DNA of 36,662 bases from Trichosphaerium sp. ATCC 40318. Its lineage: Eukaryota; Protista; Tubulinea. The stretch lies in assembly GCA_038496445.1 (NCBI GenBank), contig JALMLS010000475.1:1-36662 (forward strand). Direction: 5' to 3'. Made by a program: the position numbers and the translations under genes. The notes under the pieces are model-generated. The model had not been told where the DNA came from, did not search any database, and was given only the letters and a program-made list of their open reading frames with translations. This document shows positions 2,620 to 36,662 of the stretch, piece after piece; the stretch's first letter is position 1; each line of letters begins with the position of its first letter.

Positions 2620-2668
2620 AAGCTGAAATTCAAAGCTTGCATCGCCTTTCAACTGATATGTCATACTT
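2620..2668 (+). pseudogene. Tiny remnant of the receptor 3' end (coiled-coil tail/stop region)
   Basis: gctgaaattcaaagcttgcatcgcctttcaactgatatgtcatact resembles 30640-30700 with deletions. Confidence 0.55.
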
Positions 2669-3780: not shown

Positions 3781-3970
3781 GAACAATTGTGTAGGGAATA
3801 ATATTAGTTGTTGATTCATATCTTGCAGTCTGTAAGGCTCTGAGTATTTATAATAAATCGCGTTGGTTGGCAGCGGCCATTTATGATATGTTTGTATGGG
3901 CACTGGGATATGCTATCATGTCACCATCACTTCTCAAAAGTGTGAGTGTTCTCTTCTCAATTGCAATTTG
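3781..3970 (+). pseudogene. Receptor fragment: TM5-TM6 exon, degenerate
   Basis: Matches 10115-10323 with deletions and stops (…KALSIYNKSRWLAAAIYDMFVWA…SPSLLKSVSVLFSIAI). Confidence 0.8.
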
Positions 3971-3974
3971 TTCG

Positions 3975-4992: not shown

Positions 4993-5695
4993 ACCAATAT
5001 TGGTTCAGCCAAAACAAAAACAGTATTTGACTATATGGTGTTCCCTATATGCGTGTACAATGTTATTAACTTGGTACTGCCCCTCCTCACTTTAATTTCA
5101 ATTTGTAAAAAACACAGAAAACAATTTATTAACTACTTCTTATCGCATGTGGTAGCTGTTGGTACAGTTTCATTACGTAGTGGTACGTTCTATTAAAATA
5201 ATCCACATTTCAATTTTTTTCATTAAAAAAATCACATGAAGTTTAAACTAAGCCTTCAACGTTTACCAATATGCGTGTAGGTGCTACTCAAACCAAAGAA
5301 GAAGATAACACACTAAAAGGGAATAAAAAAGGGTACGAGCATAAAACTACCTTATATTAATAGCATAGTTGACTCAAACATTTACGTTTGCTGTGGTGTC
5401 AAAAATTGTTTGCCATGTTTTAGAAAAAAAATCACGTGTAATTAAAAAACGCGTTAACTATTACATGCTGGCGACAGCTAATGTACAGTATAGTTTTAGG
5501 GCGTGTGATGACAATATCCTGCCAAGTCAGCAAGAGGTCCGCTGTTGTTTAAACAAACAACCTCTAGGCAACCTCTTGTAACTATAGTACCACTATGTAC
5601 CAATAAATTTTTGTTTATTGGAACAGTTTTTGTGCCCCACGAAAAGAATGAAATTTCTTACCTCAAACAGATATTTAATATTTTGTTTTCTTCTG

Positions 5696-5864: not shown

Positions 5865-8800
5865 ATGGCAACACGTTACTTTTCATTATTCGTTTTCGCG
5901 GTGATGGTATCCCTTCACCAATGCGCAGTACTTCATGTGGCCACCAACGGTAAGGATTAATTTAATTCCTTGTTCAGCAGAGGGTGTATTAACGGTACTA
6001 TTGTAGGTATAGATGATGGCGACTGTAGTCGTTTGAACCCATGTAAATCCTTGAGATATGCCTTGTTTTCTGAGGCGATATCTGATGACGTGATAAAGCT
6101 TAGCGCTGGAGTGTATGCGGGTACGACAGAACAGTTTTCAACAATTATTAAATAGTTTTGTTCAAGGCGACAACAATACCAAGCTCACGTGGGAACCGCT
6201 GAATCTGTCCAAAATTACGATTGAAGGTACGTTTATGGTTTTAGCTCAACGCACTAAATCACTAAGCTTTTGTTATTAAAACGTGTGATAGGAAGCGGTG
6301 ATTTAGAAACTATTATTGACGGTGAAGATACCAATTACTTTATGAATGTAACGACTTTTGGTACTAATATTACACTCTCAAACCTTGTAATTCAACAGAT
6401 GGAGTGTCCTCGGTTTAACGTACAACATACAATTACCGCTGAGTTTAACAATATTAAAACCCTCTTTAGTGTGACGACGACTATGATATCGCTTCGGTAG
6501 TTCAAATACGAGGTGGGCACGTTGACATTAGGTACAGCCTGCAAACAATTAAGCTCTTGTTTTTGTCTTTTTTGAGGAATTATTTGGTTTGAGTAGTTAC
6601 TGTTATTGTCTGTTTCATTCAAGTTTTGAGACAGACTGACTTTTAGCAAAAAAAATCCAGTTTCTGCCCGATCTGTCAGATCTGACGGATTTGACACAAA
6701 TTGTCATTTTTTTAAATGTGATCTACCCTCACGCCTGTCCAACCGTTTCAAACCCACGCGATTTAACAAACCCAGAGCAAACTTTTTATTTACATATTTG
6801 ACGCCTAGCGTTTACAAAGCCTACAGCAACGCTGGTGGTGTTTTGGGGCGGTTTTGACGTTGTTACACCTTCATTGCTGCTTGGATGCTACCATAGCGCT
6901 TCTGTTAGCGTGGGGTAGGCGCTAGCGTAGCGCTAGTAAGTTATACACGTACGTTGATTTTTTGAAGCAAAACATACAGCAAACAGTGTTTGAGGCATTC
7001 ATACCGTGTTTGGCGGTAATGCGATAGCTTTGTAGGACATCATACCTTTTTAATTCGCTTTTAGCGCATTGAACACCTCTGTGGTTTGATCGTACCGTGT
7101 ACAGTTGGCGTAGGTAAAATACTGCGATCATCTTCCATGGTCTGTTGAAACTTACATTGAAAATTTTGCTATCACTTACCGTAAGGTACCTAAGTCATAC
7201 AATGAAGGACAACATTGTAGCACAAATAGTTCACATTGTGATAGATCTACACCATTTGACAGAAGTGTCAGATCTTGCTAGATCTGCTAAAAGTGCTAAA
7301 AACTCACTTTCTAGAAAATATTAGTAAAACTTGAATGAGACAGACAATATTGCGTTTTTTCACGTGTATTTCTCGTAGAGACATTTTTTTTCATCCTACT
7401 CTAGTATCCATCACAATAAGTCTATTCTAACTGGTACTATTGTAGGGACTGTGTTTTTCGTCAAAACAAATGCGGCAACTGTACATACTTTCACACAAGC
7501 ATAGTACAAAATCAAGGAGGCTCCATGTTATTGAAAGGGTTGGAGGACATTTGAACTTGTAGTTTTACTGATAACTCTTTAGAGTACATTTTGAAGGAAA
7601 CTCAGCAAGTGTCAGCATTTTAAACTCTAGACTAGTTGTTGAAAATTCGACCTTCGAACATGGACACGCGTACAAAGGTGCCGCTTTCAAAACAAATTGT
7701 TGCTTACTGCTACAGGGTATATTTACGGGGAAGGAAAATTGAACGTGATTGTAAAGAATAGCAGCTTTTTATTTGGTTCAAATGGCTATGGAGGAGGCGT
7801 CTGTAGGTTACCACGTTTTTTTAGAGTTAATTGTGTCTAGCAATTATATCATCTCAAAGCCACATATCAACTGCGCACATTTCAGATTCTAAATTTACAA
7901 ACAACTTTGGTGGGACACTGGCGCTTGCTAATGTAGACGCCTCAATACAAGACTGCACTTTCAGGTAAAATAAATGAACGTACAGTGCTAATGCGATTGT
8001 AGTAATAACATTGCTGGTGGAGTTTACAGCCTTGGTGGCTATTTCTCAATGCAAGACTGCACTCTTAGGTAAAATAAATGATCTATAGCGCTGATGCAGT
8101 TGTAGTAATAACATCGCTCGAGTTGGAGTACTAACACTGCATATAAAAAATGCTAAAGTAGAAAATAACATATTCAAGAACAATACTGGATCAGGCACTA
8201 CCATATATTGCCATAATATACGCTGATAGAATCTAGCTATCTCAATCAATAGTGATTTTGCAAATGATTTAATAACTAACGGATATTTTAAAAACATTAC
8301 AGAAGTTTCAAACAATATGTTCGAAAATACCAATCCAGATGATTTTGATGACTTGTTCCCACAGATTACTGGAGGTACCTTTTTCTATTTGTAGCTGTAT
8401 TAATGACATATCACTCAGGTAATGCGTTTAGCACACTGCGTGTAGCACAGGTTTGGATCAAAGAGCAATCAGACACTGTTGAACATCTGGTCATAGAAAA
8501 CGGCTTTTTGAATTTTTCAAAGGATGGAGTGTTGGAAGTGTATTCGAGTTTTAATGCTGAAAGTGGACGAATTTATGTACTGTTGTTGAAACAAAAACAA
8601 TGCACTGTTTAACTCGTAAATTTAGGGAACGTCTTCTAACCTTGAGAAACAGCTCATACTCAAACGCAATTGCACCTCCTCAGTTACTGGCACAATGTTT
8701 GACTCCATAGGAATAGAAAACAAAGGTACATGTCTTAGTTGAAAGATCACGTGATTAACCTTATAAAAATAGGATCAATGAGCTTACATACTTTATTATT

Positions 8801-10672
8801 AAGTAGCATAATATATATTCCTCATACTACTATTGTTAACCTCGAATATGCTACTTTTAGAATTGCACCAGAGATGTTTGTTCATGGGCAAGAAAGTCAT
8901 TTGAAAATGCTTCAAAACTCGACATTAGTTGTTGAAGTAAGTGTATGGTTGTGTCAACTTGCTTACGGATGTGTAGGGACGTGTAGGTCTAAAATCTACA
9001 AATGTTATTATTAGCCCTCAAAGTAGGTTCAGTATTATTTTGGGCAAGTCTTATTTGGCCATCACTGAATCAAATATTACTATTCGTAAGTTTGTAATTG
9101 TTTACAGCCTTTCGATTAATGTGTGTTTAGTGGGTACACTGTTCATATCAATACCTGGTTCAACACATGTTCGACCGTTTGACATGTTCCCTTTGATTGA
9201 ATTCTCTCAAGGGTCAAGTGTTATATTCAATGGAACCATGGTTGTTGACCACCAGTACAGTACTTTTCCATTTTCGACAGCATTAGTGTTTTCAAATAGT
9301 TCCATGTCAATTCAGATGGTGGAAAGAGAACAAACCTTAAGAGTTTGGAGGTGGAGTGATGCTACAACTATAATAGGAATATCAGTTGGGTGCTTTGGAT
9401 TGCTTTTAACTCTGTTTGTAGTCACTGTTGTATTATACTTTTGGTATGTCATTTTCAACAACACTAACTAACGGTTGAATAGGAAATCTTCACCAATATT
9501 GAGGGCATCAACACCAGAACTACTTGTGGTTATCCTCGTTGGTATCTGCTTGTTGTATTGTGGCACAATTGTTTGGTATGGCAGTAGTACTATGAAGTTT
9601 GTCTACTAAAACTAACTCAATAAAGGACTGCTCCTATATCTGATGTTATCTGTGAGTTGCGGATATGGATTCCATTGATGGGATTTATTACTACTATGGC
9701 GTACGCTTTATTTCAGTACAACTACAATAGTTTGAACTACTAATCACAACTTTAAGGCCGCTTGTGGCGAAAACTTACAGAATTCACAGAATATTTAACA
9801 CCCTCAATAAATGTCCAACTCATGTTGTTGCAGTGCCTCTAATAGATGTGGTTAACCTAACAGCTGCATTAATTTGCGGTCAAATAGTATCCTTATGCCA
9901 TGCCATTGTTTGTTTTGTTACTTGTTTATCCTTAAACTTGGTAAGATTGCTTTAATTGTGTGGTCGGCAATGTCTCCAAACCGAATTGGTTACACACCAG
10001 ATCCAAACAATAGCAACTTTAAACTTGGACACTGTGAGAGTAGATATGCTAGTGTATTTTTGATTATCACTATCCTCTACAATGTACACACACTATTGGT
10101 ACTTTATTCTGCTTAACAATTGTGTAGGGAATAATATTGATTGTTGGTTCATATCTTGCATTCGCTGTCCGTAAGGCTCCAAGTATTTATAATGAATCAC
10201 GTTGGTTGGGAGCAGCTATTTATGATATGTTTGTATGGGCGCTGATACTTGTTGGTTTGGGATACGCCATCACGTCACCATCACTTCTCAAAAGTGTGAG
10301 TATTCTATTCTCAATTGCAATTTGGATAAGTACAACAGGTATAGCACAAACAACTTTGGACCTAATTACTAAATCTTGTTCTGTAGTGACTCTTGTTGTT
10401 ATCTTTGCGCCTAAGTTGTATGTCATTTTATTTGGCAATGACGTACCTCTCAGTTCTCAACAGTAAGTACACTATGTGCTCATTTATGAGCTAATGATGT
10501 TAGGCAACATTCGCTTGATTTCGGTGGTTTGAACATCCGCAAAGAACCTGATTTGAAGAAGAAAATTAAAAAACTGGAGGCCGAGAATCAAAGTTTACAA
10601 ACCGAAAACCTAAGTTTACAAACTGAAAATGAAAGCTTGCATGCTCGCCTTTCAACAAGTAATACCAATTGA
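5865..10672 (+). CDS. Class C (GABA-B/Grl-like) GPCR with N-terminal pectin-lyase/Pmp-like beta-helix ectodomain, copy 2 (~24 exons, roughly 900-950 aa)
   Basis: Manual splicing gives an open frame: signal peptide; VATNG-DDGDCSRLNPCKSLRYAL..DVIKLSAGVY; FxxN/GG repeats; 7TM motifs KSSPILRASTPELL, CELRIW..GF, AKTYRIHRIF, RKAPSIYNESR, IFAPK; coiled coil KIKKLEAENQSLQTENLSLQTENESL; TGA at 10670-10672. Confidence 0.88.
6606..7347. mobile_element. Non-autonomous TIR element (742 bp, TA target duplication; Tc1/mariner-type behaviour) inside intron 5 of copy 2
   Basis: 22-bp TIR TTGTCTGT(T/C)TCATTCAAGTTTT with one mismatch; TA at 6604-6605 and 7348-7349. The empty site tgtTAttgcg is present in copy 3 at ~19955-19964. 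Confidence 0.9.
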
Positions 10673-13544: not shown

Positions 13545-13924
13545 GCGCAGCCAGAAATGAGTGTAACAGACGTCTATTACCAATAGAGCTTCAGCTAGAT
13601 ATTATGTGCCAGTTCGAGTGGAAACATGGTAAACAAGAAGGGTTCAAGTATTGGTATGACAATGGCCAATTATTCGAATAGTGTTATTCCATTAATGGTA
13701 AATTTGATGTAGAGTTTAAAGTTTGGCATAAGAACAGGGTATTGAATGAGTTGTGTTACTTTGTTAATGACAAAAAAGATGGAGAATACAAATGTTGGTA
13801 CAAAAATGGTCAATTGGAGGAGCAATACTACTTTGTCAATGGCATACGACATGGAGAATACAAGAGTTGGTTTGAAAATGGCCAACTGAAGGACCATTGC
13901 TATTTTATCAAACAACAAGATTAG
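13545..13924 (+). pseudogene. MORN-variant (YwqK-like) repeat protein, intronless, one internal TAG
   Basis: RLLPIELQLDIMCQFEWKHGKQEGFKYWYDNGQLFE*CYSINGKFDVEFKVWHKNRVLNELCYFVNDKKDGEYKCWYKNGQLEEQYYFVNGIRHGEYKSWFENGQLKDHCYF: four 24-aa GxYKxWYxNGQL repeats. Confidence 0.8.
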
Positions 13925-17827: not shown

Positions 17828-17869
17828 TACACAGTGCGTCTACATAAAATAATGTGATCGTCTTGCCAA

Positions 17870-18085
17870 GGTCTTTGAAACTTACATTAAAAATGTGTTT
17901 ATCACTTAAGGGTGTAAGTGTAAGTTGTACTATGATAGGCAGCATTGCGATTAATGGCACACAATAGTTCACATTGTGATAGATCTACACCATTTGACAA
18001 AAGTGTCAGACTTTGCTAGATCTGCTAAAAGTACTAGAAACTCACTTTCTAGAAAATATTAGTAAAACTTGAATGACATAGACAA
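17870..18085. mobile_element. Truncated copy of the right end of the 6606-7347 element
   Basis: High identity to 7140-7347, ending aaaacttgaatgacatagacaa-TA. Confidence 0.85.
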
Positions 18086-18189
18086 TAGTCCACTTTTAAC
18101 AACACTCTGAGCGCTGTTGGTTCTGATATGCAAACATGTTTGAAAACTGTGAGAAACTTTTCGAAAAAAATTCAGACTGTTATGTAATT

Positions 18190-18480
18190 AACACAAGTGC
18201 GCTGTAGTGTTTTAAGTACAAATATACGCGATATCAGTGTGCTATTGATAGCCACTAAGACGTTGTCTTGTCTCCCAAACAATCCGTACTAGTTGCCTAG
18301 CTGGCGCATGGTTATTCTAACAATGATATTTTTGTGTTTTTGAGAAGAGGACTTCCTGAAAGACTTGAACAATGCGACGTTGATTTAACAAGATACAATT
18401 GTATCCAACGTGATAGTGTATAATGTTGGATAATAATCTACAACTTTGAGAGACGTTAAATCGATCGGAACCATCCACAA
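18190..18480 (-). pseudogene. F-box/LRR gene fragment (copy of 4540-4825)
   Basis: Direct similarity to 4540-4825; joined to the upstream region by a deletion. Confidence 0.75.
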
Positions 18481-19218
18481 AACTCAAAAATCACATGAAG
18501 TTTAAACTAAGCCTTCAACGTTTACCAATATGCGTGTAGGTGCTACTCAAACCAAAGAAGAAGATAACACACTAAAAGGGAATAAAAAAGAGTACAAGCA
18601 TAAAGAAACTACCTTATATTAATAGCATAGTTGACTCAAACATTTACGTTTGCTGTGGTGTCAAAAACTGTTTGCCATGTTTTAGAAAAAATCATGTGTA
18701 ATTAAAAAACGCGTTAACTATTACTCCGACAAAACCAAACCGCGTAATGGTATGAATTGCGCGTACTTTAAACTTTTTTGAAAATAAATCTTGTAACATC
18801 TGACAAAGAATTTTCAAGTCACAAAAAGGTACATGCTGGTGACAGCTAATGTACAGTATAGTTTTAGGGCGTGTGATGACAATATCCTGCCAAGTCAGCA
18901 AGAGGTCCGCTGTTGTTGAAAGAAACAACCTCTAGGCAACCTCTTGTAACTACTGTACCAAAATTTTTGTTTATTGGAACAGTTTTTGTGCCCCACGAAA
19001 AGAATGAAATTTCTTACCTCAAACAGATATTTAATATTTTGTTTTCTTCTGGTATGTTATACATTATTTGAAAAGGCAGCATGCTTCGAACTATACTTCG
19101 AACAAAATATCGAACTGGTTCGAACCGTTTTTTGTGTATGTGAATACTAACGAAGTATTGTGTATCACAATTATTTTGCAGTGTTGTGCAGTATCCTTTG
19201 TAACTATTTCCAAAAGAT

Positions 19219-22200
19219 ATGGCAACACGTTACTTTCCATTATTCATATTAGCGGCAATGGTATCTCTTCACCAATGTGCAGTACTTCATGTGGCCACCA
19301 ACGGTAAGGATTAATTTAATTCCTTGTTCAGCAGAGGGTGTATTAACGGTACTATTGTAGGTATAGATGATGGCGACTGTAGTCGTTTGAACCCATGTAA
19401 ATCCTTGAGATATGCCTTGTTTTCTGAGGCGATATCTGATGACGTGATAAAGCTTGGCGCTGGAGTGTATGCGGGTACGACAGAACAGTTTTCAATAAGT
19501 ATTGAATAGTTTTGTACAAGGCTACAGTAATACCAACCTCACGTGGGGTGTTCTGAATCTGTCCAAAATTACGATTGAAGGTACGTTTATGGTTTTAGCT
19601 CAACGCACTAAATCACTAAGCTTTTGTTATTAAAACGCGTGGTAGGAAGCGGTGATTTAGAAACTATTATTGATGGTGTAGATACCAATTACTTTATGAA
19701 TGTAACGACTTTTGGTATTAATATTACACTCTCAAACCTTGTAATTCAACAGATGGCGTGTCCTCGGTTTAACGTACAACATACAATTACCGCTGAGTTT
19801 AACAATATTAAAACCCTCTTTAGTGTGACGACGACTATGATATCGCTTCGGTAGTTCAAATACGAGGTGGGCACGTTGACATTAGGTACAGCCTGCAAAC
19901 AATTAAGCTCTTGTTTTTGTCTTTTTTGAGGAATTATTTGGTTTGAGTAGTTACTGTTATTGCGTTTTTTCACGTGTATTTCTCGTAGAGACATTTTTTT
20001 TCATCCTACTCTAGTATCCATCACAATAAGTCTATTCTAACTGGTACTATTGTAGGGACTGTCTTTTTCGTCGAAACAAATGCCACAACTACAACGCATG
20101 TTACATACGAACTAGTAACATAATACAAAACCAAGGAGGCTCTATGTTACTGAAAGGGTAGGAGGATATTTGAACTTGTAGTTTTACTGATAACGCTTTA
20201 GAGTACATTTTGAAAGAAATTTAGGCAGCGTTAGCATTATCAACTCATCACTAGTTGTTGAAAGTTCAGTCTTCAAACATGGATCCCGAGGTGCCGCTTC
20301 CAAAACAAATTGTTGCTTACTGCTACAGGGTATATTTACGGGGAAGGAAAATTGAACGTGATTGTAAAGAATAGCAGCTTTTTATTTGGTTCAAGTGGCT
20401 ATGGAGGAGGCATCTGTAGGTTACCACGTTTTTTTAGAGTTAATTGTGTCTAGCAATTATATCATCTCAAAGCCACATATCAACTGCGCACATTTCAGAT
20501 TCTAAATTTACAAACAACTTTGGTGAGATACTGGTGCTTGCTAATGTAGACGCCTCAATACAAGACTGCACTTTCAGGTAAAATAAATGAACGTACAGTG
20601 CTAATGCGATTGTAGTAATAACATTGCTGGTGGAGTTTACAGCCTTGATGGCTATTTCTCAATGCGAGGCTGCACTCTTAGGTAAAATAAATGATCTATA
20701 GCGCTGATGCAGTTGTAGTAATAACATCGCTCGAGTTGGAGTACTAACACTGCATATAAAAAATGCTAAAGTAGAAAATAACATATTCAAGAACAATACT
20801 GGATCAGGCACTACCATATATTGCCATAATATACGCTGATAGAATCTAGCTATCTCAATCGATAGTGGTTTTGGAAATTACATAGAAACTAACGGATATT
20901 TTAAAAACATTACAGAAGTTTCAAACAATACGTTCGAAAATACCAATCCAGATGATTTTGATGACTTGTTCCCACAGATTACTGGAGGTACCTTTTTCTA
21001 TTTGTAGCTGTATTAATGACATATCACTCAGGTAATGCGTTTAGCACACTGCGTGTAGCACAGGTTTGGATCAAAGAGCAATCAGACACTGTTGAACATC
21101 TGGTCATAGAAAACGGCTTTTTGAATTTTTCAAAGGATGGAGTGTTGGAAGTGTATTCGAGTTTTAATGCTGAAAGTGGACGAATTTATGTACTGTTGTT
21201 GAAACAAAAACAATGCACTGTTTAACTCGTAAATTTAGGGAACGTCTTCTAACCTTGAGAAACAGCTCATACTCAAACGCAATTGCGCCTCCTCAGTTAC
21301 TGGCACAATATTTGACTCCATAGGAATAGAAAACAAAGGTACATGTCTTAGTTGAAAGATCACGTGATTAACCTTATAAAAATAGGATCAATGAGTTTAC
21401 ATACTTTATTATTAAGTAGCATAATATATATTCCTCATACTACTATTGTTAACCTCGAATATGCTACTTTTAGAATTGCACCAGAGATGTTTGTTCATGG
21501 GCAAGAAAGTCATTTGAAAATGCTTCAAAACTCGGCACTAGTTGTTGACGTAAGTGTATGGTTGTATCAACTTGCTTACGAATGTGTAGGGACGTGTAGG
21601 TCTAAAATCTACAAATGTTATTATTAGCCCTCAAAGTAGGTTCAGTATTATTTTGGGCAAGTCTTATTTGGCCATCACTGAATCAAATATTACTATTCGT
21701 AAGTTTGTAATTGTTTACAGCCTTTCGATTAATGTGTGTTTAGTGGGTACACTGTTCATATCAATACCTGCTTCAACACATGTTCGACCGTTTGACATGT
21801 TCCCTTTGATTGAATTCTCTCAAGGGTCAAGTGTTATATTCAATGGAACCATGGTTGTTGACCACCAGTACAGTACTTTTCCATTTTCGACAGCATTTGT
21901 ATTTTCAAATAGTTCTGTGTCAATTCAAATAATGGAAAGAGAACAAACCTTAAGAGTTTGGAGGTGGAGTGATGCTACAACTATAATAGGCATATCAATT
22001 GGGTGCTTTGGATTGCTTTTAACTCTGTTTGTAGTCACTGTTGTATTCTACTTTTGGTATGTTGTTAAAAAATCATATCTTCAAGAGCTCTATCTAACGG
22101 TTGAATAGGAAATCTTCACCAATATTGAGGGCATCAACACCAGAACTACTTGTGGTTATTCTCGTTGGTATCTGCTTGTTGTATTGTGGCACAATTGTTT

Positions 22201-23294
22201 GGTATGGCAGTAGTACTATGAAGTTTGTCTACTAAAACTAACTCAATAAAGGACTGCTCCTATATCTGATGTTATCTGTGAGTTGCGGATATGGATTCCA
22301 TTGATGGGATTTATTACTACTATGGCGTACGCTTTATTTCAGTACAAATACAATAGTTTGAACTACTAATCACAACTTTAAGGCCGCTTGTGGCGAAAAC
22401 TTACAGAATTCACAGAATATTTAACACCCTCAAGAAATGTCCAACTCATGTTGTTGCAGTGCCTCTAATAGATGTTATTAAACTAACAGCTGTATTAATT
22501 TGTGGTCAAATAGTATCCTTATGCCATGCCATTGTTTGTTTTGTTTTTGTTTATCCTTAAACTTGGTAAGATTGCTTTAATTGTGTGGTCGGCAATGTCT
22601 CAAAACCGAATTGGTTACACACCAGATCCAAACAATATCAACTTTAAACTTGCACACTGCGAGAGTAGATATGCTAGTGTATTTCTGATTATCACTATCC
22701 TCTACAATGTACACACACTATTGGTACTTTATTCTGCTTAACAATTGTGTAGGGAATAATATTGATTGTTGGTTCATATCTTGCATTCGCTGTCCGTAAG
22801 GCTCCAAGTATTTATAATGAATCACGTTGGTTGGGAGCAGCTATTTATGATATGTTTGTATGGGCGCTGATACTTGTTGGTTTGGGATACGCCATCACGT
22901 CACCATCACTTCTCAAAAGTGTGAGTATTCTATTCTCAATTGCAATTTGGATAAGTACAACAGGTATAGCACAAACAACTTTGGACCTAATTACTAAATC
23001 TTGTTCTGTAGTGACTCTTGTTGTTATCTTTGCGCCTAAGTTGTATGTCATTTTATTTGGCAATGACGTACCTCTCAGTTCTCAACAGTAAGTACACTAT
23101 GTGCTCATTTATGAGCTAATGATGTTAGGCAACATTCGCTTGATTTCGGTGCTTTGGACACCCTCAATGAGCCTGATTTGAAGAAAATTAAAAAACTGGA
23201 GGCCGAGAATCAAAGCTTACAAACTGAAAACCTAAGTTTACAAACTGAAAATGAAAGCTTGCATGCTCGCCTTTCAACAAGTAATACCAATTGA
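19219..23294 (+). CDS. Beta-helix ectodomain class C GPCR, copy 3 (apparently intact)
   Basis: Same exon structure as copy 2; ATG at 19219, TGA at 23292-23294; the divergent exons I translated stay in frame. Confidence 0.88.
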
Positions 23295-23779: not shown

Positions 23780-24480
23780 TTTTTTTTTCGAAAAATTCAG
23801 AAAGCCACTATCAATGACCAGATGTAACAGTGTCAGAATGCTCTTCAACCCAACTTGAAAACAGTAATAGGTGCAAGGCATTGCCAATAAAATACATTGG
23901 TTGTTTCGATATTGCTTATACAGCACCTCCCAAATTTGAAGCCTTGTTGCTAAAAAACAAGCAATTTGTCACATTTACTGCTCCATTGGCTCCGCTATTA
24001 ATTCCCGCTCTAAGTCCAGCTCCATTCTGTCCGATCTTATTTGTAAATGTACTATAGTATAAACTAACAGCGCTGTCAATGAGCTCCTCCTCGTCGAGAA
24101 ATTCCTGAAGGGTTTATGGCTGTATTATTGAAGAAGATTATATTGTTGCAAAGCACCTTCCCAGCGTCTGTGTATAACCCACCACCTGATGAGGCAGAAT
24201 TACCATCACTTTTCATCGCTATATTGGTACTATGTAGTCCACCTCCATAACCAGCGATATTATTACTACAAATACATAAGCGACACATACTCAATTTTTT
24301 ACCTGAAGTGCAGTTTTGTATCTCAATCTCCACATAAAGAAGCCTCACTCCCCACCATAAGATGTAGCTTTGTTGTGTGCGAATTTAGAACTTGAAATGT
24401 GCACAGTTGATTCGAGCCTTTGAGATGATTCAATTGGTAGAAACTATTAACTCTACAAATTCTTTCAACTTACCTATCAC
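23780..24480 (-). pseudogene. Fragment of a more divergent paralog of the receptor ectodomain
   Basis: SNNIAGYGGGL, GNSASSGGGLY, FFNNTA..RGGA, FFSNKASNLGGAV, then WVEEHSDTV/HLVIDSGFLNFSK matching WIKEQSDTVEHLVIENGFLNFSK; same ctgcacttcag|gtaaa…ttgtag|taataa intron; contains stops. Confidence 0.75.
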
Positions 24481-24509
24481 TTCTATTTCGAAAAAAATTC
24501 GTATCTTTC

Positions 24510-25020
24510 AAACTGTAATGTTATTCGCACAAGTGCGCTGTAGTGTTTTATGTACAAGTGTACACGACATCAGTGCGCTATTGATAGCCACTAAGACGTT
24601 GGCTTTCCTAGACATCAATCTTGATCCTGTTATGTTGTAGTTACATTGAAAGAATAGCGCTTGAACACCAGAAAGAAGAGAAAGATCTTTGTCTGTTGCT
24701 TCCGGGAAGGACAAAAAAGATATGATGGTTTGTGAGAAGAGGACTTCCTGAAAGACTTAAAAATGCGATGTCGATTTAACAAGATACCAACGTGATAGTG
24801 TATAATGTTGGATAATAATCTACAACTTTGAGAGACGTTAAATCGATCCACAAACTCAAGTAAATGAGCAAGTATCTCCCATTGGTACGTCTAACAACTC
24901 AATTGTCAATACTACTAGATTCGCTAATGCTGCGATGGTCCTCTGGCTTCCTTTCCGTTTATATTTACTGTTGCGATTTACATAATCACAGTAAGTTTGG
25001 CGCTCAGTGCTTCATGACAA
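24510..25020 (-). pseudogene. F-box/LRR gene fragment, third copy
   Basis: Similar to 4540-4992; retains an extra LRR, SFPEATDKDLSLLSGVQALFFQCNYNITGS. Confidence 0.75.
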
Positions 25021-25897
25021 ACCAATATTGGTTCAGCCAAAACATAAACAGTATTTGACTATATGGCGTTCCCTATATGCGTGTACAATGTTATTAACTT
25101 GGTACTGCCCCTCCTCACTTTAATTTCAAATTGTAAAAAACACAGAAAACAGTTTATACTACTTCTTATCGCATGCGGTAGCTGTCAGTACAGTTTCATT
25201 ACATAGTGATACGTTATGAATAATCCACATTTCAATTTTTGTAAAAAATCACATGAACATCTCAAAAATAAGCCTTCAACGTTTACCAATATGCGTGTAG
25301 GTGCTAACCAAAGAAGAAGATAACACACAAAAAGGGAATAAAAAAGGTTACGAGCGTAAAGAAACTACCTAATATTAATGCTAGCATAGTTGACTCGAAC
25401 GTTTACGGCAAACACTTTAGTGTGGAATAAAAATCACATGTGTATTAAAAAAAAACGCTTTAACTATTACTCTGACAAAACAAACCGCGTAATGGTATGA
25501 ATTGTACTTCAAACTTTTTTGAATAAATCTTATAGCTATCTGACAAAGAAGTTTCGAAAGTCACAAAAAGGTACATGGCACAGCTAAGCTGTACAACTAA
25601 TGTACACCATGTACCAATAAATTTTGGTGAACAATTATTTGCCCGCCACACGGGTTTTCTCACGAAAAGACTGAAATTTCTTACCTCAAAATAGATATTT
25701 AATATAAAAAGGTTGTTTGTTTTCTTCTGGTATGCTATACATTATTTGAAAGGCAGCATGGTTCGAACTATACTTCGAACAAAATATCGAACTGGTTCGA
25801 ACCGTTTTTTGTGTTTATGTGAATACTAACGAAGTATTGTGTATCACAATTATTTTGCAGTTTCTTGCAGTATCCTTTGTAACTATTTCCAAAAGAT

Positions 25898-28800
25898 ATG
25901 GCAACACGTTACTTTTCATTATTCGTATTAGCGGTAATGGTATCCCTTCACCAATGTGCAGTACTTCATGTGGCCACCAACGGTAAGGATTAATTTAATT
26001 CCTTGTTCAGCAGAGTGTATTAACGATACTATTGTAGGTACAGATGATGGCGACTGTAGTCGTTTGAACCCATGTAAATCCTTGAGATATGCTTTGTTTT
26101 CTGAGGCGATATCTGGTGACGTGATAAAGCTTGGCGCTGGAGTGTATGCGGGTACGACAGAATAGTTTTCAATAAGTATTGAATAGTTTTGTACAAGGCG
26201 GCAGTAATACCAACCTCACGTGGGGTGTTCTGAATCTGTCCAAAATTACGATTGAAGGTACGTTTATGGTTTTGCCTCAACGCACTAAATCATTAAGCTT
26301 TGTTATTAAAACACGTGGTAGGAAGTGGTACATTAAAAACTATTATTGACGGCGGAGATACCAATTACTTTATGAATATCCAGACGTTTGGTGGTGTTAA
26401 TATTACACTCTCAAACCTTACAATTCAACAGATGGCGTGTCCTCAGTTTAAAGTACAACATACAATTAACGCTGAGTTTAACAATATTAAAACTCCACTT
26501 TAGTGTAACGATGGCAGTGATATCGCTTCAGTACTTACAACACGAGGTGGGCATGTTGACGTTAGGTACAGCCTGCAAAAGCTGCAAATTATTGAGGGTT
26601 TAGTATTGGGGGTTTTTTTTATCAAAACACGTGGCTTTATTCGTAGCAAACCTACGCCTGCTCTTGTAGGTTTCTTAGGGCTACCATGGTAACCCTTCAC
26701 TCATGTTTTTTAATGTGTTCGCTTTGCCGATATTGTTTTTTCTTTTTTGGGAATTATTTGGTTTGAGTAGCTACTGTTATTTTGTTCACGTATATCTCTC
26801 GTCGCTACCTTCTTTTTCATCCTCTAGTATCCATTACTATTCTAACTGGTCTATTGTAGGGACTGTATTTTTCGTCAAAACAAATGCGGCAACTGTACAT
26901 ACACTACATACTTTTACACAAAAAGCCCTATAAGTATAATACAGAATCAAGGAGGCTCTATGTTATTGAAAGGGTAGGAGGACATTTGAACTTGTAGTTT
27001 TACTGATAACTCTTTAGAGTACATTTTGAAGGAAACTCAGCAAGTGTCAGCATTTTAAACTCTAGACTAGTTGTTGAAAATTCGACCTTCGAACATGGAC
27101 ACACGTCCAAAGGTGCCGCTTTCAAAACAAATTGTTGCTGACGGTTGCAGGGCAAATTTATGGCGATGGAACAGTCAATGTGATTGTAAAGAATAGCAGC
27201 TTTTTATTTGGTTCAGCATATGAAGGTGGAGGAATCGGTAGGTTTACCACGTTTTGTTGGAGCTAATTGTTCTAGCAATTAAATCATCTGATGAATCAAC
27301 AGTACACATTTCAGGCTCTAAATTTACAAACAACCAAGCTACATCCTTTGGTGGGGCAGTATCGCTTACTTATGGGGACATCTTAATACAAGACTGCACT
27401 TTCAGGTAAATAAATGAGTGTAGAAAAATAATGAATGAATAGCACTTATGCAGTTGTAGTAATAACATCGCTCATACTGAAGGTGGCGGATTATTCAGCA
27501 GTGTTAGCAATTTCTCAATGAAAGGCTGCACTTTCAGGTAAATAAAAGAGTTTAGAAAATAATGAATGAATAGCACTTATGCAGTTGTAGTAATAACACC
27601 GCTATTGTTAGTGGTGGTGGATTATCCAGTTGGTTTAGTAGCAGTTTCTCAATTAAAGACTGCACTTTCAGGTAAATAAATGAGTGTAAAAAAATAATGA
27701 ATGAATAGCACTTATGCAGTTGTAGTAATAACACCGCTAGTGGTAGTGGTGGTGGATTATCCAGTCGGTTTAGTAACAGTTTCTCAATGAAAGGCTGCAC
27801 TTTCAGGTAAATAAATGAGTGTAAAAAAATAATGAATGAATAGCACTTATGCAGTTGTAGTAATAACACCGCTATTGGTAGTGGTGGTGGATTATTCAGC
27901 AGTTATAGCAATTTCTCAATGAAAGGCTGCACTTTCAGGTAAATAAAAGAGTTTAGAAAATAATGAATGAATAGCACTTATGCAGTTGTAGTAATAACAC
28001 CGCTAGTGGTGGTGGTGGATTAATCAACGAGTATGGCAATTTCTCAACACAAGGCTGCACTTTCAGGTAAACTAATGTGTATAGAAAAAATGAATGAATA
28101 GCTAATGCAGCTGTAGTAATAACATCGCTGATGATAGAGGTGGTGCACTAAGGCTGATAACAAGTAATGTTACAGTAGAAAATAACTTATTCAAGAACAA
28201 TACTGTATCAGGTACTACCATATATATACCATAATATACGCTGATAGAATCTAGCTATCTCAATTAATATCATACCTGGAAATACTAGAATAAATTATGG
28301 TTATTTAAAAAACACTACAGTATCAAACAACACATTCGAAAATACCAATCCAGATGATTTTGATGGCTTGTTCCCACAGATTACTGGAGGTACCTTTTTC
28401 TATTTGTAGCTGTGTTAATGACATATTGTTCAGGTAATGTATTTAGCACATTGCGTATGCCACTGTTTTCAAATTGGATCAAAGAGCAATCAGACACTGT
28501 CGAACATCTGGTAATTGAAAACGGCTTTCTGAATTTTTCGAAGGATGGAGTGTTGGAAGTGTATTCGAGTTTTAATGCTGAAAGTGGACGAATTTATGTA
28601 CAGCGTTCAAACAAAAACGACACGCTGTTTAATCCTTGTAAATTTAGGGAATGTCTTCTAACCTCGAGAAACAGCTCATACTCAAACAGAATTGCACCTC
28701 CTCAGTTTCTGGCATGATAATAGATTCCATAGGAATAGAAAACAAAGGTACATGTCTTAGTTGAAAGGTCACGTGATTAACCTTGTAAAATAGGATCAAT

Positions 28801-30690
28801 GAGCATACATAGTTTATTATTAAGTAGCACAATCTATATCCCTCATACTACTATTGTTACCCTCGAATATGGCACTTTGCGAATTGCACAGGAGATATTT
28901 ATTCATGGGCAAGAAAGTAGTTTGAAAATGCTTCAACACTCGACATTAGCTGTTGACGTAAGTATATTTTAGCTTGCTAAATAACAAATAACTAATAGGG
29001 ACGTGCAAGACTAAAATCTACAGATATTTTTGTTAGCTCTCAAAGTAGGTTCAATATTACACTGGGCAAGTCTTATTTGGCCATCACTGAATCAAATATT
29101 GCTATTCGTAAGTTTGTGATTGTTTACAGCCTTTGATTTATTTTGTTTAGTGGGTACACTGTTCGTATCAATACCTTCAACACAATTTCAACTGTTTGAC
29201 TTGGTCCCTTTGATTGAATTCTCTCAAGGGTCAAGTGTTATATTTAATGGAACCATGATTGTTGACCACAGCACTACTTTTCCATTTTCGACTGCATTAG
29301 TGTTTTCAAATAGTTCCATGTCAATTCAGATTGTAGAAAGAGAACGAACCTTAAGGGTTTGGAGGTGGAGTGATGCTACGACTATAATAGGAATATCAGT
29401 TGGGTGCTTTGGATTGCTTTTAACTCTGTCTGTAGTCACTGTTGTATTATACTTTTGGTATGTCATTAAAATCGTATTTTCTCAACAACACTAACTAACG
29501 TTTGAATAGGAAATCTTCACCAATATTGAGGGCATCAACACCAGAACTACTTGTGGTTATTCTCGTTGGTATCTGCTTGTTGTATTGTGGCACAATTGTT
29601 TGGTATGGCAGTAGTACTATGGAGTTTGTCTACTAAAATTAACACATTAAAGGAGTGCTCCTATATCTGATGTTATCTGTGAGTTGCGGATATGGATTCC
29701 ATTGATGGGATTTATTACTACTATGGCGTACGCTTTATTTCAGTACAACTACAATATGTTTGAACTACTAACCACAACTTTAAGGCCGCTTGTGGCGAAA
29801 ACTTACAGAATTCACAGAATATTTAACACCCTCAAGAAATGTCCAACTCATGTTGTTGCAGTGCCTCTAATAGATGTTGTTAAACTAACAGCTGGATTAA
29901 TAAGCGGTCAAATAGTATCATTATGCCTTGATTTTGTTTGTTTCGCTTTTGTTACTTTTGTTTATCCTTAAACTTGTTAAGGTTGCTTTAATTATGTGGT
30001 CAGTAATGTCTCCAAACCGGCTCAGGCACACAACAGATCCAGGCGATAGCAGCTTTCAAGTTGCGCACTGCAAGAGTAGATATGCTAGCGTATTTCTGAT
30101 TATCACTATTGTCTATAATGTACGCAAGCCATTGGTACTTCATTCTATTAAACAATTGTGGTAGGGAATAATATTGATTGTTGGTTCATATCTTGCGTTT
30201 GCAGTCCGTAAGGCTCCAAGTATTTATAATGAATCACGTTGGTTGGGAGCAGCTATTTATGATATGTTTGTATGGGCGCTGATACTTGTTGGTTTGGGAT
30301 ACGCCATTACGTCACTATCACTTCTCAGGAGTGTCAGTATTCTTTTCTCAGTTGCAATTTGGATAAGTACAACAGGTACATCACAAACAACTTTGAACGT
30401 AATTACTAAATCTTGTCTTTTAGTGACTCTTGCTGTTATCTTTGCGCCAAAGTTGTATGTCATTTTCTTTGGCAATGACGTACCTCTCAGGTCTCAACAG
30501 TACGTACTTTGTGTGTACTCATTTGTGAGTTAATGACGTTAGGCAACATTCGCTTGATTTAGGTGCTTTTGACAGCCGCAAAGAACCTGATTTGAAGAAG
30601 AAGATTAAAAAACTGGAGGTTGAAAATCACAGTTTACAAACTGAAATTCAAAGCTTGCACGCTCGCCTTTCAACTAGTAGTACCAATTGA
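25898..30690 (+). CDS. Beta-helix ectodomain class C GPCR, copy 4, with four extra beta-helix exons (apparently intact)
   Basis: ATG at 25898, TGA at 30688-30690; canonical FTNNQATSFGGAV repeat; ectodomain exons in frame; coiled coil one heptad shorter than in copies 2/3. Confidence 0.88.
27390..28130 (+). repeat. Tandem array of ~130-bp intron+exon units (6 introns, 5 full cassette exons)
   Basis: Introns at 27406-27459, 27538-27590, 27672-27725, 27807-27860, 27939-27991 and 28067-28117; exons of 78, 81, 81, 78 and 75 nt, all phase 2-2. Confidence 0.92.
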
Positions 30691-31347
30691 TATGTGATAC
30701 TTCCTCATTGTTTATGTTAACAATTTGGTTATAAATAAAACCTTGGTCCTCTGACTTTTGTCTTTCGCTCCGTAACACCTAGTGTTTTTCTTCCCCGTAC
30801 AAAGATTTAGAACGTTTATAACTATGTAACAGCACACACGTGCTAATTCATGGCACGTGAATGCAGTAGCAAGGCTTTGACTTGAAATTGCACTCCGTTA
30901 TTTTAGGGTTAAGCTATCTTTTAAAAGACTCACTTTATTAATAACTAGATTTACCAAAAAAATTGAGCAAAGTTTAGCTTTACACCATCCTTTACTTTTA
31001 CCAAGCTGTTTACCATCAACCAACATAAATTAACACTTTAGTTGGCGTGTCTTCCTTTCACATTTTACCATTGATATGTACTGCCCCTTAAGGGCGTATC
31101 GACTAGGAGGAAGCATCATTTTCAAAAGCATGAACAACACGATGCTCTTTGGTGCATCAATATTCTCAGAATTTTTTTGGAATTTACAATTTTATTAATT
31201 TCTTGGCTCAAAAAATAGGCACATACAATAAATGTTTTGCAGAGTTACCTAAACAAACCAAGGGACCCATTTTTTTCCTTCTTTTTACAATAATTCCAAA
31301 AAAAGGGTCTGAAAATTAAATGTTTGTTTTTGGGTTTTGGTTTTTTT

Positions 31348-34300
31348 TTAGTCGTTTCTTGGATCAAAATCATCAAGGTTATCATCATCATCGTCTCCGC
31401 CATCCAATGAAATAAGACTTACATCAGGAGGAGGTCCCTCAATCGAGTCATCATCATCATCATCAAGTAACGGTATAGGTTTATCATCATCATCGTCACC
31501 GAACTCTAATTTCATCGCTAAAAAACTCAAAGTAAGTACCAACAAAAAAACCTCTGCAGTAAGATTATATATCGTACCTGATCCTTCAACAACACTACCT
31601 ACTTCACCTTCAAGTTCAGTGTTCTGTTCTTTATCTTTCATACGTTGAAGCATCTCTACTGTTTCTTCATCCTTACCAAGTTGAACAGCTGGTGTAGGAG
31701 TAGTACAACGACGACAACAGTAGATAGCAGCAGCAATGAAAATCAAGGCACCAATGACAGCACTGATAATCTACAGCAAACAGTTAATTGTCGTTCACTA
31801 ATAAAAAAAGAAACATCCAAAATTTAAAATCACGTACAATAATCCACATGGTCATGCCACCACTAGCGGTTGGCGTGTTAGGCTCAATTGGCGCTTGTGG
31901 AGGTGTAGGCGTTAGTGTTGCGGCAGGAGCAATAGGAGTAGGTGCAACACCTGTTGGTGATGCTGTAGGTACAGGTGGAACAGTACCACTGCGCATGCTA
32001 TAGATGTGTTGACCCTAAAGTAAAAAGTTAAGCGAGAGAAATTCTCAGAAAATAAAATAAACAAAAGTTGTGCTTACCGCTTGGAGAACGAATTCCTTGC
32101 CAGCCTCGCTCTGTATATGATGTGCATCTAAGCTCAACTCGTAGGTGTGCCCTTCCACGAATCCAGTAGATGTAGGTGGTACAAAGAGGAGATGCCATAC
32201 AGTAAAATCATCCTCTCCAGTGAAAGCAGCTGGTACGATCGTAGGTTTGATCTTATGGCTGTGGAGCTCTCTTGATTCAAGAGAAAATGCAGCAACAATA
32301 GTATCATAGTGGGCTCTTCTTGTGATCTGTTCACCGGCTGTCGTGTATGGAGAATTAGAAAGTATAACCTCTAGCGTGATAGGTTCCGTAGGATCGAGTT
32401 GTTCACCTGCTGGAGGAAGAACTTGCTCAATAGTAGGAGTAGCACTTGAGAGAGCTGAAACAGCAATGCTCCTGAAATACAAGTGAGAATGATTGTTAAA
32501 GCGTAGTATTCAACGAAGAAGACCATTGTATGATTTTCGTACCAATAGAATGGGAAGCAAACACGTGGTGTAGTACCCAAGTCCATATTAAAAGAATCTT
32601 GCTTGATATGAACCTTGTATAATCCAGGTGAATACAATTCTTGTCCGATCTCTTGAGTAGTAGTGAACACTCCAGCGCCACTTGTGGCTTCCTCAGAGAA
32701 TAGACCCTTAGGTAAATCCTACAAAAAAAGTCAACTCATGTTAACCAATTATTAAGAAAAAACTGAGAACAGGAAACTTGATTGTTAGACCAACTACTCA
32801 TAGATAATAGATCTACGTACACGCAGGCCACCCTCGAGTTCCAGATAGAAGGCATTGGTCATGCCATTGTAAGATAACTCAACATCAACATGGGACTGTT
32901 CAGTGATATTGAACTCGATGACGTAATCAAAAGTGTCTCCGTTTGTATGTGCAGCTATTATTTCTGGTGTCATAAAGGACTCAACAGTTTCGTTAGCTTG
33001 TCCATTAACCATCTAATTCATAAATCAGTATTGCGTCTCATGAAATAATAATAATAAAGGGCGTACAGTGAGCTGTTGAAGTGGAAGTTTAGAATTAGCT
33101 GGTTGATCCTTACACATTTCAAAATCTACTCTAAATACACTCTCAAGCATTAGATCCATGGCAAAGTAAGGACAAGGACGTGGTCTATTAGCATGGGTCG
33201 TCTAAGAAAGAAAGTCAGCATACTATCCCTCGTAAAAAGGGCAAAAATCAAAAAACAAAAATAGGAAAACGCCAACGTACTGGAACGAGTTCCAAGGTGT
33301 AATTCTTGTTTCCGTTCGGTTCTAAGTAGAAGATAGACAAACGTTGGTAGTGAGCAGTAGTTGTAGTGACAGGTTGAATGACCTCAACACCGCCAGTCGC
33401 ATTGTGAGAAATGATTTTATGCTCAAAGTTTCCGTAAACCTTATGAAGCGAAGTCAAGGCTGTAAATATGCTAGGTGAACGGGCATTGAACAAGATCTGT
33501 TGTGTGAGGTACTCATTACCACGTTGTGGCAAAGCAAAGCTAGGTCCATGAATATGAACAAAGCCATCGATTACAGGCCCGCCAAACTTTTCAGAATGAG
33601 CAGTGCTGCCATCAAAGAGATCCCAAGGTAAGATTTCTTGGTTAAATGCGGTACAGGCTAAAAACGACGAGTCAATATACAAAACTCAAACAAAAAGCAG
33701 ACAAAATCGTACCTCTTCCTTCAGAACCACTGATTGTCAAAGCAAAGAAGAACTCAGGACAGTAACTAATATCTCTTGTGTGCAAGTCATATTGTAAGTT
33801 AATATCCAAAATGTATTCGCCAGCTGGAATAATCTAAAAAAAATCAGAAAAAAAATCATGGTAGGTTTTTGTTTCCAAACATGGGTTGCTGTCGTACCGT
33901 GTTGATTGTGTTTGTATTCCATCCATTTCTTCCAATAACGTCATCAGGTAACTGACCACCATGAAGAGATAGTTGGAATTCACCAAGTAAGAACTCATAT
34001 CCAATCTTAGCAAAGAAAACACTTGATTGCTCTAGAGTGAATGGTAACGACTGAATAGTCACCCAAACCTCATTTGGTTCTGGATTCTTTTCGGCATCAG
34101 CCTTGCTTAGAATCAAAGTCTTGTGTGAGTATGTGTAGTACTAGGTCACAAGTTAATCAAAGATTGTATTGTAATTTTTTCGCAAAGTCATCAGTTTGAA
34201 CAGAAACAAAACACAAAAATAATAAAACTGTGTCATAATCAGGGCCAATGCGTTATCTCACTGCCACAAGACAATAAAGTCAAGTAGTCTAGATCGAGAA

Positions 34301-36662
34301 GCTACTCATCATGGTAGACACAAATAGAAATTGTTTTACACGAAAACCGTAATGGGAAACAGTACGTACGCCTTGAGGTGAAAGATGGATTGGATCTATC
34401 TTATCAGAAGTTGTACGTTGGCTACATGATTTTTGGCTTTCCAATTTACTGATGGTATCAATAACATAGTTCTCAGGAGCCATAGAGATCTCAGTACGAC
34501 CTGTTGTAAGCTAAAAAATAAATGTTAACAAAGAAAATAGCGAATAAAAAAAGAAATAAAAGAATATCTCTCGTACGACATCATTGCCAGCAGTGAAATA
34601 AATGAAGTGGTTGTTTGTATCATTAACAATAGCAACAACATGCAATTTACCAGGAGCTTGGTATGGTACCATAGCAACTCTAGAAAGAGAACATTAACCC
34701 AAAGAAACAGTGTCTAATCAAAAAAAAATACGAACCTAATAACTTCAGGTGGACTTGGAAGTTTGAACTTAATCTTTGATGTTCTTTCACCATTTTCCCA
34801 TGTGATGTAGTCAGACACAACATGAAGCCTCTCAGTAAAGTCGAGATAAGGCAACACATTGAGGTTGGTTGGAATCTTAGGTTGTGTAACAAGAGTACGT
34901 CCATTAGCGTCATAAGGTTCTACGCTCATCTCAAGACGGAAGTGTACACATCCACGAATCTCTGGAATGTTTGCAGCGGCTTCATAGATACCGAGGGTAT
35001 AATCGCCAGCAGCCAATCCCTTGACAGTAAGGATATTACTTGTGAGAGTATTTCTACCAAAGTAAACTTCATTGTCGCTCTCTAAATTATACAAAGTTAG
35101 TAACCATCTTTTTTGAAGAGCACTGTTAACTACGTACCTTTCTTTTTCAACTTGATGAACAAGTCACTGGTTAAAAAGTCATAACCGACAGCAACATAAA
35201 GGTTGAAAGAAGTTTGGAAGCTAACAGAGTATTCCTTGGCAAGTGGAGTCTCAACTTGTGGAAAGTAAGATTTATCACTAAAAAAAAAGTCAGCAACTTG
35301 AAGATTTCTGTACACAAGAATAAAATATAGTGGCAGTACCTAGCGTAGTTATAGATGCTCAAGGTCTTTCTACCAAGAAGAGGTTGTGCCTTGACTTCAG
35401 GGAAGTGAGCAGGAGTTGGAGAGCAGCTAGTAGGCAAGTATCTATTGGAAACAGGTAGTGGCAGAACAGCAACAACCATTGAGAAAGCACTGCAAGGATC
35501 AACAGTGCTAGAATCAAGATGCCAGAACTTAAGAACGATTTTGTACTCATAACCAGGAGAAATCTTTGCAACGAAAGATTCTTCATCGTACAAGTTTCTA
35601 CCGCTAGCGATTCTAGTTCCATTTTGAGTGAGAGATACATCAATATCAACAGTAGATCTATCAACAAAGACACGAATGACAGAAACCGTCTTTACGCTGA
35701 ATTCGATTTGACGTGTAGTCAAAGCAGCTTGATCAACACCATCAGGTACATATAATCTAGTAGTTGATTCAGTACAAAGGTAATCGCTCAACAAAAAAAA
35801 AAACTAAACAACAAAAAAATACCTTAGTGGTACGGTTGAGCGTTTGCTGCCCTTCATGTATCTGATAGTATCAAGGGTCTTTGGTATTTCAACAGCATCT
35901 TCACCAGGACATTTTGGACTCTTCCAGTCGCTTGTGGTGTATGTATTCATCAAGAATGACATATGTCCGCATCTAAAGTTAAAAAGAAAATAAGCAAAAG
36001 AAGTACAACAACAAGAGCGTCGTACCGAGGAAGAACTGGATTACCGAATACATGATGATCAAATTGAGTTATTCTTAACATGTACGTTCTACCAGGGGAC
36101 AAAATTGCAGACAAGTAGTTGTAATTGTACATAGCAACACCGTATGACTCAATAGAAACTAATCAAAAAAAGTTAATATCATCCAAACCTCAAAGAAAAT
36201 ATAAAAATCAAACGTACTATCAGTAGCGTTCTCAGGGTTGACACTGTAGAGCTCAGCACGGAAATTGCTTGTCAAGAAGTCGCTACCAATACCAAATTCG
36301 AAGGCCATATTGCTACCAGTAGTGCTAAAGGTATATTCCTTGATTTGAGGACCTAGTAAAAAAAAATAGTTAAGATAATGATGATTTGCTAATTATGAAA
36401 AAAGTAGTACTTTTAATGAATGTATAGTATTCCACAGTTTCAGTGCCGTTAAAGTACTTGTTGGTACCATACGAGATACCATCAAAGATACTTCTTGAAG
36501 GTAGTTTATCAACAATATTCGTTGGGCAAGGAGCAGATATAAAGTAGTCAGGGTCAAGAGGTGATACAGCCATCTCAAAGGTCATTTCAGGACAGAACTC
36601 ATCTTAAACAAAAAATTAGTAACAAGAAAAAAAAAACAATTTGCTCGCAGCTTCTTGTAAAG
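31348..36662 (-). CDS. Large multi-exon type I membrane protein (5' end outside the window): repeated beta-rich modules, Ig-like domain, Pro/Thr stalk, TM helix, acidic tail
   Basis: Recurring G(Y/S)(D/E)FL, DIDVxL, SPGxxYxLxI, CxxFxxxMxV motifs; TPTIEQVLPPAG…GHTYELSL…IQSEAG (Big_5-like); PTASPTGVAPTP stalk; IISAVIGALIFIAAAIYCCRRC; poly-Asp tail; TAA at 31348. Confidence 0.85.

Follow-up and report, generated by a model that had tools for sequence, protein, structure and literature searches.

The window, the 36,662-nucleotide (36.7-kb) stretch of Trichosphaerium sp. ATCC 40318 DNA analyzed here, contains four paralogous receptor genes, the fourth of which carries a tandem array of small exons. 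Copy 4 (positions 25898 to 30690, plus strand) has 28 exons, encodes 1071 amino acids, and has an open frame from end to end. Copies 2 (5865 to 10672) and 3 (19219 to 23294), also on the plus strand, are intact and encode 958 amino acids each. Copy 1 (1 to 2009, minus strand) is cut by the start of the window. Its later part is 95% identical to copy 2, but 1-nt indels are abundant in it, so that copy 1 is either a pseudogene or a piece of unpolished assembly. Between copies 3 and 4 lies an inverted, broken paralog fragment with frame breaks (23790 to 24460, minus strand). The GC content of the window is 36.9%; the draft genome of Trichosphaerium has a GC content of 37.69% and short introns, with a mean of 75 nt (PMC10521059). 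A nonstandard genetic code was considered and rejected, because the apparent in-frame stops fall in introns.

Several other features were seen around and within these genes. Segments upstream of the receptor genes were duplicated along with them (4524 to 5464, 18159 to 18835, and 24486 to 25577), and one of these segments holds a short open reading frame with what looks by eye like an F-box-like stretch (4675 to 4992, minus strand). Intron 5 of copy 2 is 914 nt long, compared to 170 nt in copy 3, owing to an insertion of approximately 740 nt at about 6600 to 7350, part of which (7115 to 7349) recurs at 17845 to 18087. Exons 6 and 7 are mosaic among the paralogs (26860 to 27112, 7446 to 7677, and 20056 to 20290): between copies 3 and 2, about 21% of their sites differ, silent sites included, and the flanking introns show 0/170, 3/44, and 1/38 differences. 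Exon 7 differs at only 2 of 95 sites between copies 2 and 4, and exon 6 includes a loop of variable length. To keep the reading frame, copies 2 and 3 would require a GC-AG intron (8195 to 8236 and 20808 to 20849) where copy 4 has a GT-AG intron (28212 to 28254). A 21-nt heptad repeat is present in the coiled-coil-like tail (10581 to 10635 and 23214 to 23278), with one heptad more in copies 2 and 3 than in copy 4. Elsewhere in the window there are a 72-nt tandem repeat (13681 to 13911), whose unit resembles MORN-type repeats by eye, and a large intron-rich gene on the minus strand (31300 to 35800), which apparently encodes an extracellular protein with an acidic tail.

Pfam and database searches were run exon by exon, and spliced models were used for frame checks and divergence counts. 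Copy 4 reads, in order, as a signal peptide, a Pmp-type beta-helix ectodomain, a beta-rich stalk, a class C (7tm_3) seven-helix domain, and a coiled-coil-like tail. The 7tm_3 domain was recognized in the exon at 30165 to 30374 (E = 8e-8; 32.6 bits on a 70-amino-acid piece, against a whole-domain cutoff of 33.5) and, less clearly, in the exon at 29786 to 29935 (E = 0.03), and seven hydrophobic segments can be seen by eye in the gene model. Canonical class C G-protein-coupled receptors (GPCRs) carry a Venus flytrap ligand domain. Copy 4 has none, and its ectodomain is of the Pmp/beta-helix type. Pfam matches to beta-helix families were weak on the exons that flank the array and absent from the one array exon scanned; GGA(I)/FxxN rung motifs are present in every array unit. 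The two best matches to the exon that encodes TM6-7 were the protein P0002 (MMETSP0405, Trichosphaerium sp. ATCC 40318) and the ENA metagenome contig L001, with 51% and 46% identity, respectively. P0002 is 1238 amino acids long and combines a Beta_helix domain (E = 3e-39) with 7tm_3, and 7tm_3 was found in all nine long matches scanned. L001 (42% GC), which likely comes from another amoeba, contains an apparently complete homologous receptor gene at 1090 to 5160; the gene upstream of it looks BTB-like by eye. P0002 and L001 have the same beta-helix plus 7tm_3 layout as copy 4. Judged by these matches, copy 4 is a putative class C GPCR with a Pmp-like right-handed parallel beta-helix ectodomain, in agreement with the GPCR beta-helix setting assumed in the initial annotation.

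The receptor family is transcribed and spliced. In three public runs, contigs show GT-AG joints at the positions of ten introns downstream of the array, and one spliced contig from a related copy bridges the last array intron (joint 28066 to 28141, depth 3.9). As these spliced contigs match mostly copies 2 and 3 or other relatives, they do not establish transcription and splicing of copy 4. No contig spans the array, and no transcript of the copy 4 array was found in the four public runs, three of which gave spliced contigs, mainly of paralogs. The introns of this gene that are spliced out are 41 to 67 nt long.

The array was detected by Tandem Repeats Finder at 27390 to 28145 (period 135, 5.7 copies, score 1035). 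It consists of five symmetric phase 2-2 exons, each corresponding to one Pmp-type beta-helix rung, and six GT-AG introns of 50 to 54 nt, which is an ordinary length for this gene. On its 5' side, exon 9 (27276 to 27405; Chlam_PMP, E = 0.002, below the curated cutoff) ends at the same phase-2 junction (CTF/S). Then follow, all on the plus strand, intron 1 (27406 to 27459, 54 nt), rung exon 1 (27460 to 27537, 78 nt), intron 2 (27538 to 27590, 53 nt), rung exon 2 (27591 to 27671, 81 nt), intron 3 (27672 to 27725, 54 nt), rung exon 3 (27726 to 27806, 81 nt), intron 4 (27807 to 27860, 54 nt), rung exon 4 (27861 to 27938, 78 nt), intron 5 (27939 to 27991, 53 nt), rung exon 5 (27992 to 28066, 75 nt), and intron 6 (28067 to 28116, 50 nt). 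Exon 15 (28117 to 28211; Beta_helix, E = 0.034, weak) has the same rung start (SNNIA) and then exits the array. Every array exon starts with T and ends with AG, giving AGT (Ser) at each junction. All 32 inclusion patterns of the five rung exons keep the frame and are free of stops, whereas retention of any array intron leads to an immediate stop. Introns 1 to 5 differ from each other by 0 to 3 substitutions and one 1-nt indel and fall into two types, A (introns 1, 3, and 4) and B (introns 2 and 5), with introns 2 and 5 identical and introns 3 and 4 identical. Intron 6, with 6 or 7 substitutions and 2 gaps relative to the others, is a diverged edge copy. A 27-nt word from the 3' part of the introns occurs exactly five times in the window (none expected from shuffles), and across each acceptor 43 nt are invariant, namely, 35 nt of intron end and 8 nt of exon start.

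Most of what the initial annotation had read from this region is borne out by these data. The five exon translations with their phase 2-2 symmetry and variable residues match exactly, the first five introns are indeed almost identical, and exons can be omitted without a frameshift. Copies 1 to 3 have, as had been stated, a single rung exon each: those of copies 2 (8003 to 8068) and 3 (20616 to 20681) are 66-nt, phase 2-2 exons in intact genes, and that of copy 1, at about 330 to 394, carries a 1-nt deletion. The intron consensus proposed there resembles introns 3 and 4, from which it differs by one base in the 5' part, but a single consensus does not describe what are really two intron types. 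The orphan cassettes for which a search had been suggested were not found in the 36.7-kb window, nor were inverted or inactivated exons within its introns.

The homologs indicate how this arrangement may have arisen. The L001 gene has intron positions in common with the window gene in the leader, in the membrane parts, and flanking the rungs, but all its rungs are in one exon of about 450 nt. In the inverted fragment at 23790 to 24460, the same phase-2 intron is likewise followed by several rungs in one exon, and the rungs of P0002 are old and mutually unlike. As L001 and the fragment both keep several rungs together, the arrangement with one rung per exon is most likely the derived state, which would have been reached by duplication of the intron together with one rung. 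Copy 4 would then provide a clear example of an exon-per-repeat structure that arose secondarily, through duplication of an intron-bearing unit. There is no genomic contig of P0002 on record. Homolog searches from P0002 returned only bacterial-type Pmp-like proteins and one beta-helix-like MMETSP receptor (P0035), and no match was obtained when metagenomes were scanned with a protein profile and with the junction pattern.

To place the variable residues, we used a single-sequence structure model of the distant homolog P0002, which has a mean pLDDT of 60 overall and of 60 to 93 for most ten-residue blocks in the repeats. Each rung in this model has three strands, in standard terms PB1 (after the glycine run), PB2, and PB3 (which ends in FxxN). 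PB1 and PB2 are connected by a loop of 3 to 5 residues (T1), PB2 and PB3 by a turn of two residues (T2), and PB3 is followed by a long loop (T3). The matches of the model in the PDB were weak, and all were right-handed beta-helices that bind or cut glycans or act as adhesins. Beta-helices usually bind their substrate between PB1 and T3 (PMC10992409). The variable columns of the array are in the distal T3 loop, at the residue after GGGL, and in T1; when the columns are mapped by way of the P0002 model, the 10 that belong to T3, PB1, and T1 have 17 extra residues, versus 5 for the remaining 16. The variable residues are therefore likely to lie on the usual binding face. Several of them are Phe, Trp, or Tyr, which would resemble glycan-binding grooves. 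This placement fits selection but is no proof of it: surface loops are tolerant of change in any case, and the variable T3 codons sit in a slippage-prone GGT/AGT tract.

The units also differ in how they are related. In terms of intron types (A and B) and exon types (alpha, beta, and gamma), their order is A-alpha-B-beta-A-beta-A-alpha-B-gamma. When the 3' half of each exon is compared together with the next intron, units 1 and 4 differ by 2 nt and units 2 and 3 by 4 nt, versus 8 to 20 nt for the other pairs; the 3' half of exon 5, whose GGT tract is one codon shorter, is the most divergent. The 5' halves of the exons group otherwise, as that of exon 4 is 1 nt from those of exons 2 and 3 and 9 nt from that of exon 1, which differs from exons 2 to 4 at 9 of 28 nt. 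In the simplest reading, one duplication of two units and one of a single unit took place, and an exon was cut by a crossover close to its GGT tract. Exon 4 would then be an apparent half-rung chimera, with its T3 loop of the beta type and its PB1/T1 part of the alpha type. Rapid change confined to the 5' half of exon 1 could yield the same pattern, and crossovers could just as well have taken place in the invariant stretch across each acceptor (35 nt of intron and 8 nt of exon). A four-gamete count (27 of 91 pairs) was not taken to prove recombination, since its value varies with the framing of the units. The idea that the introns serve as recombination handles holds in part: the 43-nt invariant acceptor stretch would be usable for crossover, and there are signs of past duplication and exchange, but one exchange seems to cut inside exon 4. 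Since at least one exchange seems to be intra-exonic, whole-exon shuffling would not be the only mode.

The introns are more alike than the exon centers, as the initial annotation had proposed. Among the units, 26 of 81 exon sites are variable versus 3 of 54 intron sites (Fisher P = 2e-4); if the introns are restricted to their 28-nt core, in which 3 sites vary, P is 0.028. Minimum-change counts gave about 26 to 31 replacements, 3 or 4 silent changes, and 3 intron changes, and the mean pN/pS among units was 1.8 to 3.1, varying with gap placement. Over all five units, which are short and not independent, the replacements exceed the expectation from silent plus intron sites (P = 1e-4 to 0.03); with the inner units 2 to 4 only, this excess is marginal (P = 0.01 to 0.36), and with these inner units and the intron core taken together it is not significant (P = 0.10 to 0.36). 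A similar picture is seen between the paralogs. Introns in the helix half diverge by 7 to 8.5%, versus 16 to 18% in the membrane half (P = 1e-4 and 0.005), whereas it is the helix-half exons that diverge more. Within the helix half, fourfold sites differ at 13 to 17%, compared to the 7 to 8.5% of the introns. A general constraint on short introns was rejected, as the membrane-half introns diverge twice as much as the fourfold sites of the same gene. The introns of the ectodomain half thus look homogenized, while exon differences persist. The pN/pS ratio between paralogs is mostly 0.7 to 0.8 in the helix (in five of six comparisons; the sixth, with 9 changes, gives 2.2) versus 0.4 to 0.5 in the membrane domain. 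The helix evolves faster than the membrane domain, which falls short of proving positive selection.

The explanation that we favor, and consider fairly probable, is tandem duplication and conversion at the DNA level, with selection on one face of the helix and constitutive splicing into a longer recognition rod. An intron at the Phe-Ser/Asn-Asn point of a rung would have created an intron-plus-exon unit of about 132 nt that encodes precisely one rung in a constant frame. From one, this unit could have been multiplied to five in copy 4 by unequal genomic crossing-over: one duplication would have involved two units and another a single unit, and at least one crossover would have fallen within an exon, linking the T3 loop of one rung with the PB1/T1 part of a different one. 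Ongoing conversion would keep the introns and the scaffold codons alike. The exons do vary in excess of the introns, and the cause may be selection that keeps or favors differing residues on the PB1 face. Inclusion of all five exons is most likely constitutive and would produce a single, longer rod along which differing aromatic and polar residues are lined up. Judged by the fold relatives and by fAR1 of Dictyostelium, the receptor would probably recognize glycans or proteins on the surface of prey or of other cells and signal via the class C domain.

Less probable, but to be taken seriously, is that the array was amplified neutrally. The loops would have drifted or slipped early, after which conversion homogenized only the flanks and introns that were still similar, mismatches having blocked it in the exon centers; the rungs would be a length spacer and the differences between them without function. 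This would fit with the replacements showing no significant excess over silent changes alone across all five units (P = 0.26 to 0.39), with the pN/pS of the helix, mostly below 1 between paralogs, and with the degenerate trinucleotide tract, from which a codon was lost in exon 5. It fits less well with the sister exons 2 and 3, which differ by six scattered single-base changes, all of them replacements and none silent, next to identical downstream introns; the probability of this is 0.01 to 0.04 if the changes are neutral. Neutral amplification also does not readily account for PB2 and PB3 codons that are nearly fixed while PB1 and T1 vary.

A repertoire produced by splicing, as in brown algal ROCO or Dscam, in which combinatorial skipping of rungs would give up to 32 receptors per gene, appears quite unlikely to us. 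The frame-neutral combinations described above would allow it, introns 1 to 5 carry the same splice signals, and the ROCO LRR exons, which also have splice variants, are likewise in phase 2 (PMC11378527). Very short introns, however, usually mean intron definition, and exon skipping is then rare. The array introns are of the ordinary length for this gene, so no steric exclusion is expected, and mutually exclusive splicing by a steric mechanism was rejected because equally short introns of this gene are spliced normally. None of the array introns, each folded singly, showed a significant hairpin (z = -1.0 to +1.3). There was no skipping joint among the joints listed, which come from contigs, mostly of paralogs, and contigs cannot reveal skipping.

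That the array is an assembly artefact, in which reads of paralogs or alleles were concatenated, is very unlikely. Copy 1 is rich in 1-nt indels, parts of the window may be unpolished, and no read spans the array, but no two units are the same, all 28 exons form one open frame, and the units differ by codon-structured replacements rather than homopolymer errors. Least probable of all is a programmed somatic rearrangement from donor cassettes, similar to that of the lamprey VLR, for which the 43 nt of perfect identity across each acceptor would be suitable, but copy 4 is already a complete gene, the 36.7 kb contain neither orphan nor inverted cassettes, and no recombinase or signal was seen.

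To our knowledge, it is poorly known how amoebae discriminate between prey, kin, and parasites. With its variation in rung number (one versus five) and in groove residues, this family is a candidate, open to testing, for a variable system of pattern recognition. Going further, one could imagine that Trichosphaerium has a diversified recognition repertoire on beta-helix GPCRs, in which rung cassettes, whole or half, are gained, lost, and recombined so rapidly that isolates or nuclei differ, possibly with further variation by splicing, and in which the binding groove is under selection. We put this forward as a doubtful idea; if true, the beta-helix would be the third scaffold used in this way, after LRR and WD40/TPR, and here in a single-celled phagocyte. 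The class C receptor fAR1 is a proven sensor of lipopolysaccharide (PMC5969738).

The separate elements of this gene have been described before. In the Dictyostelium receptors GrlP, GrlQ, and GrlR (PMC1885808) and in gut-fungal class C GPCRs with a pectin-lyase fold (PMC5168858), a Pmp/beta-helix ectodomain replaces the Venus flytrap as in copy 4; the parts of these reports available to us describe no one-rung-per-exon array. Within limited coverage of the literature, we found no paper that combines these features in a beta-helix GPCR. The receptor layout is thus already known, and one repeat per phase-2 exon is known from ROCO. Like copy 4, the brown algal ROCO LRR and NB-ARC-TPR genes (PMC3341825; PMC11378527) have one repeat per symmetric exon (72 nt, phase 2, in ROCO), and in ROCO repeat number also varies between paralogs and the variable residues are on the binding face, with splice variants and selection on that face detected by site models (PMC3341825; PMC11378527). 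The ROCO analogy drawn in the initial annotation is therefore apt for the symmetric one-repeat exons and the variable, likely binding, face. It does not extend to the ROCO hallmarks of inverted or inactivated intronic exons and scattered donor exons, which are absent from the window, and the introns of copy 4, at 50 to 54 nt, have no room for noncoding exons. Moreover, ROCO has its LRR on a GTPase, whereas copy 4 has an extracellular beta-helix on a GPCR and no ROC-COR or LRR. In the catarrhine L/M opsins (PMC3213168), introns were homogenized by conversion and exon differences retained by selection, as would be the case in copy 4, but these are whole-gene paralogs with population data, whereas copy 4 has intragenic units from one assembly. 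The WD40 repeats of the Podospora NWD genes het-d and het-e (PMC1805685) also resemble copy 4 in that they are homogenized in concert except at a few surface positions, which diversify. Their number is variable as well, in a known allele series with a recognition phenotype, compared to a single assembly for copy 4, and het-d and het-e do not have an intron of their own in each repeat as copy 4 does. By analogy, the array would work like het-e and partly like ROCO, and it belongs to neither.
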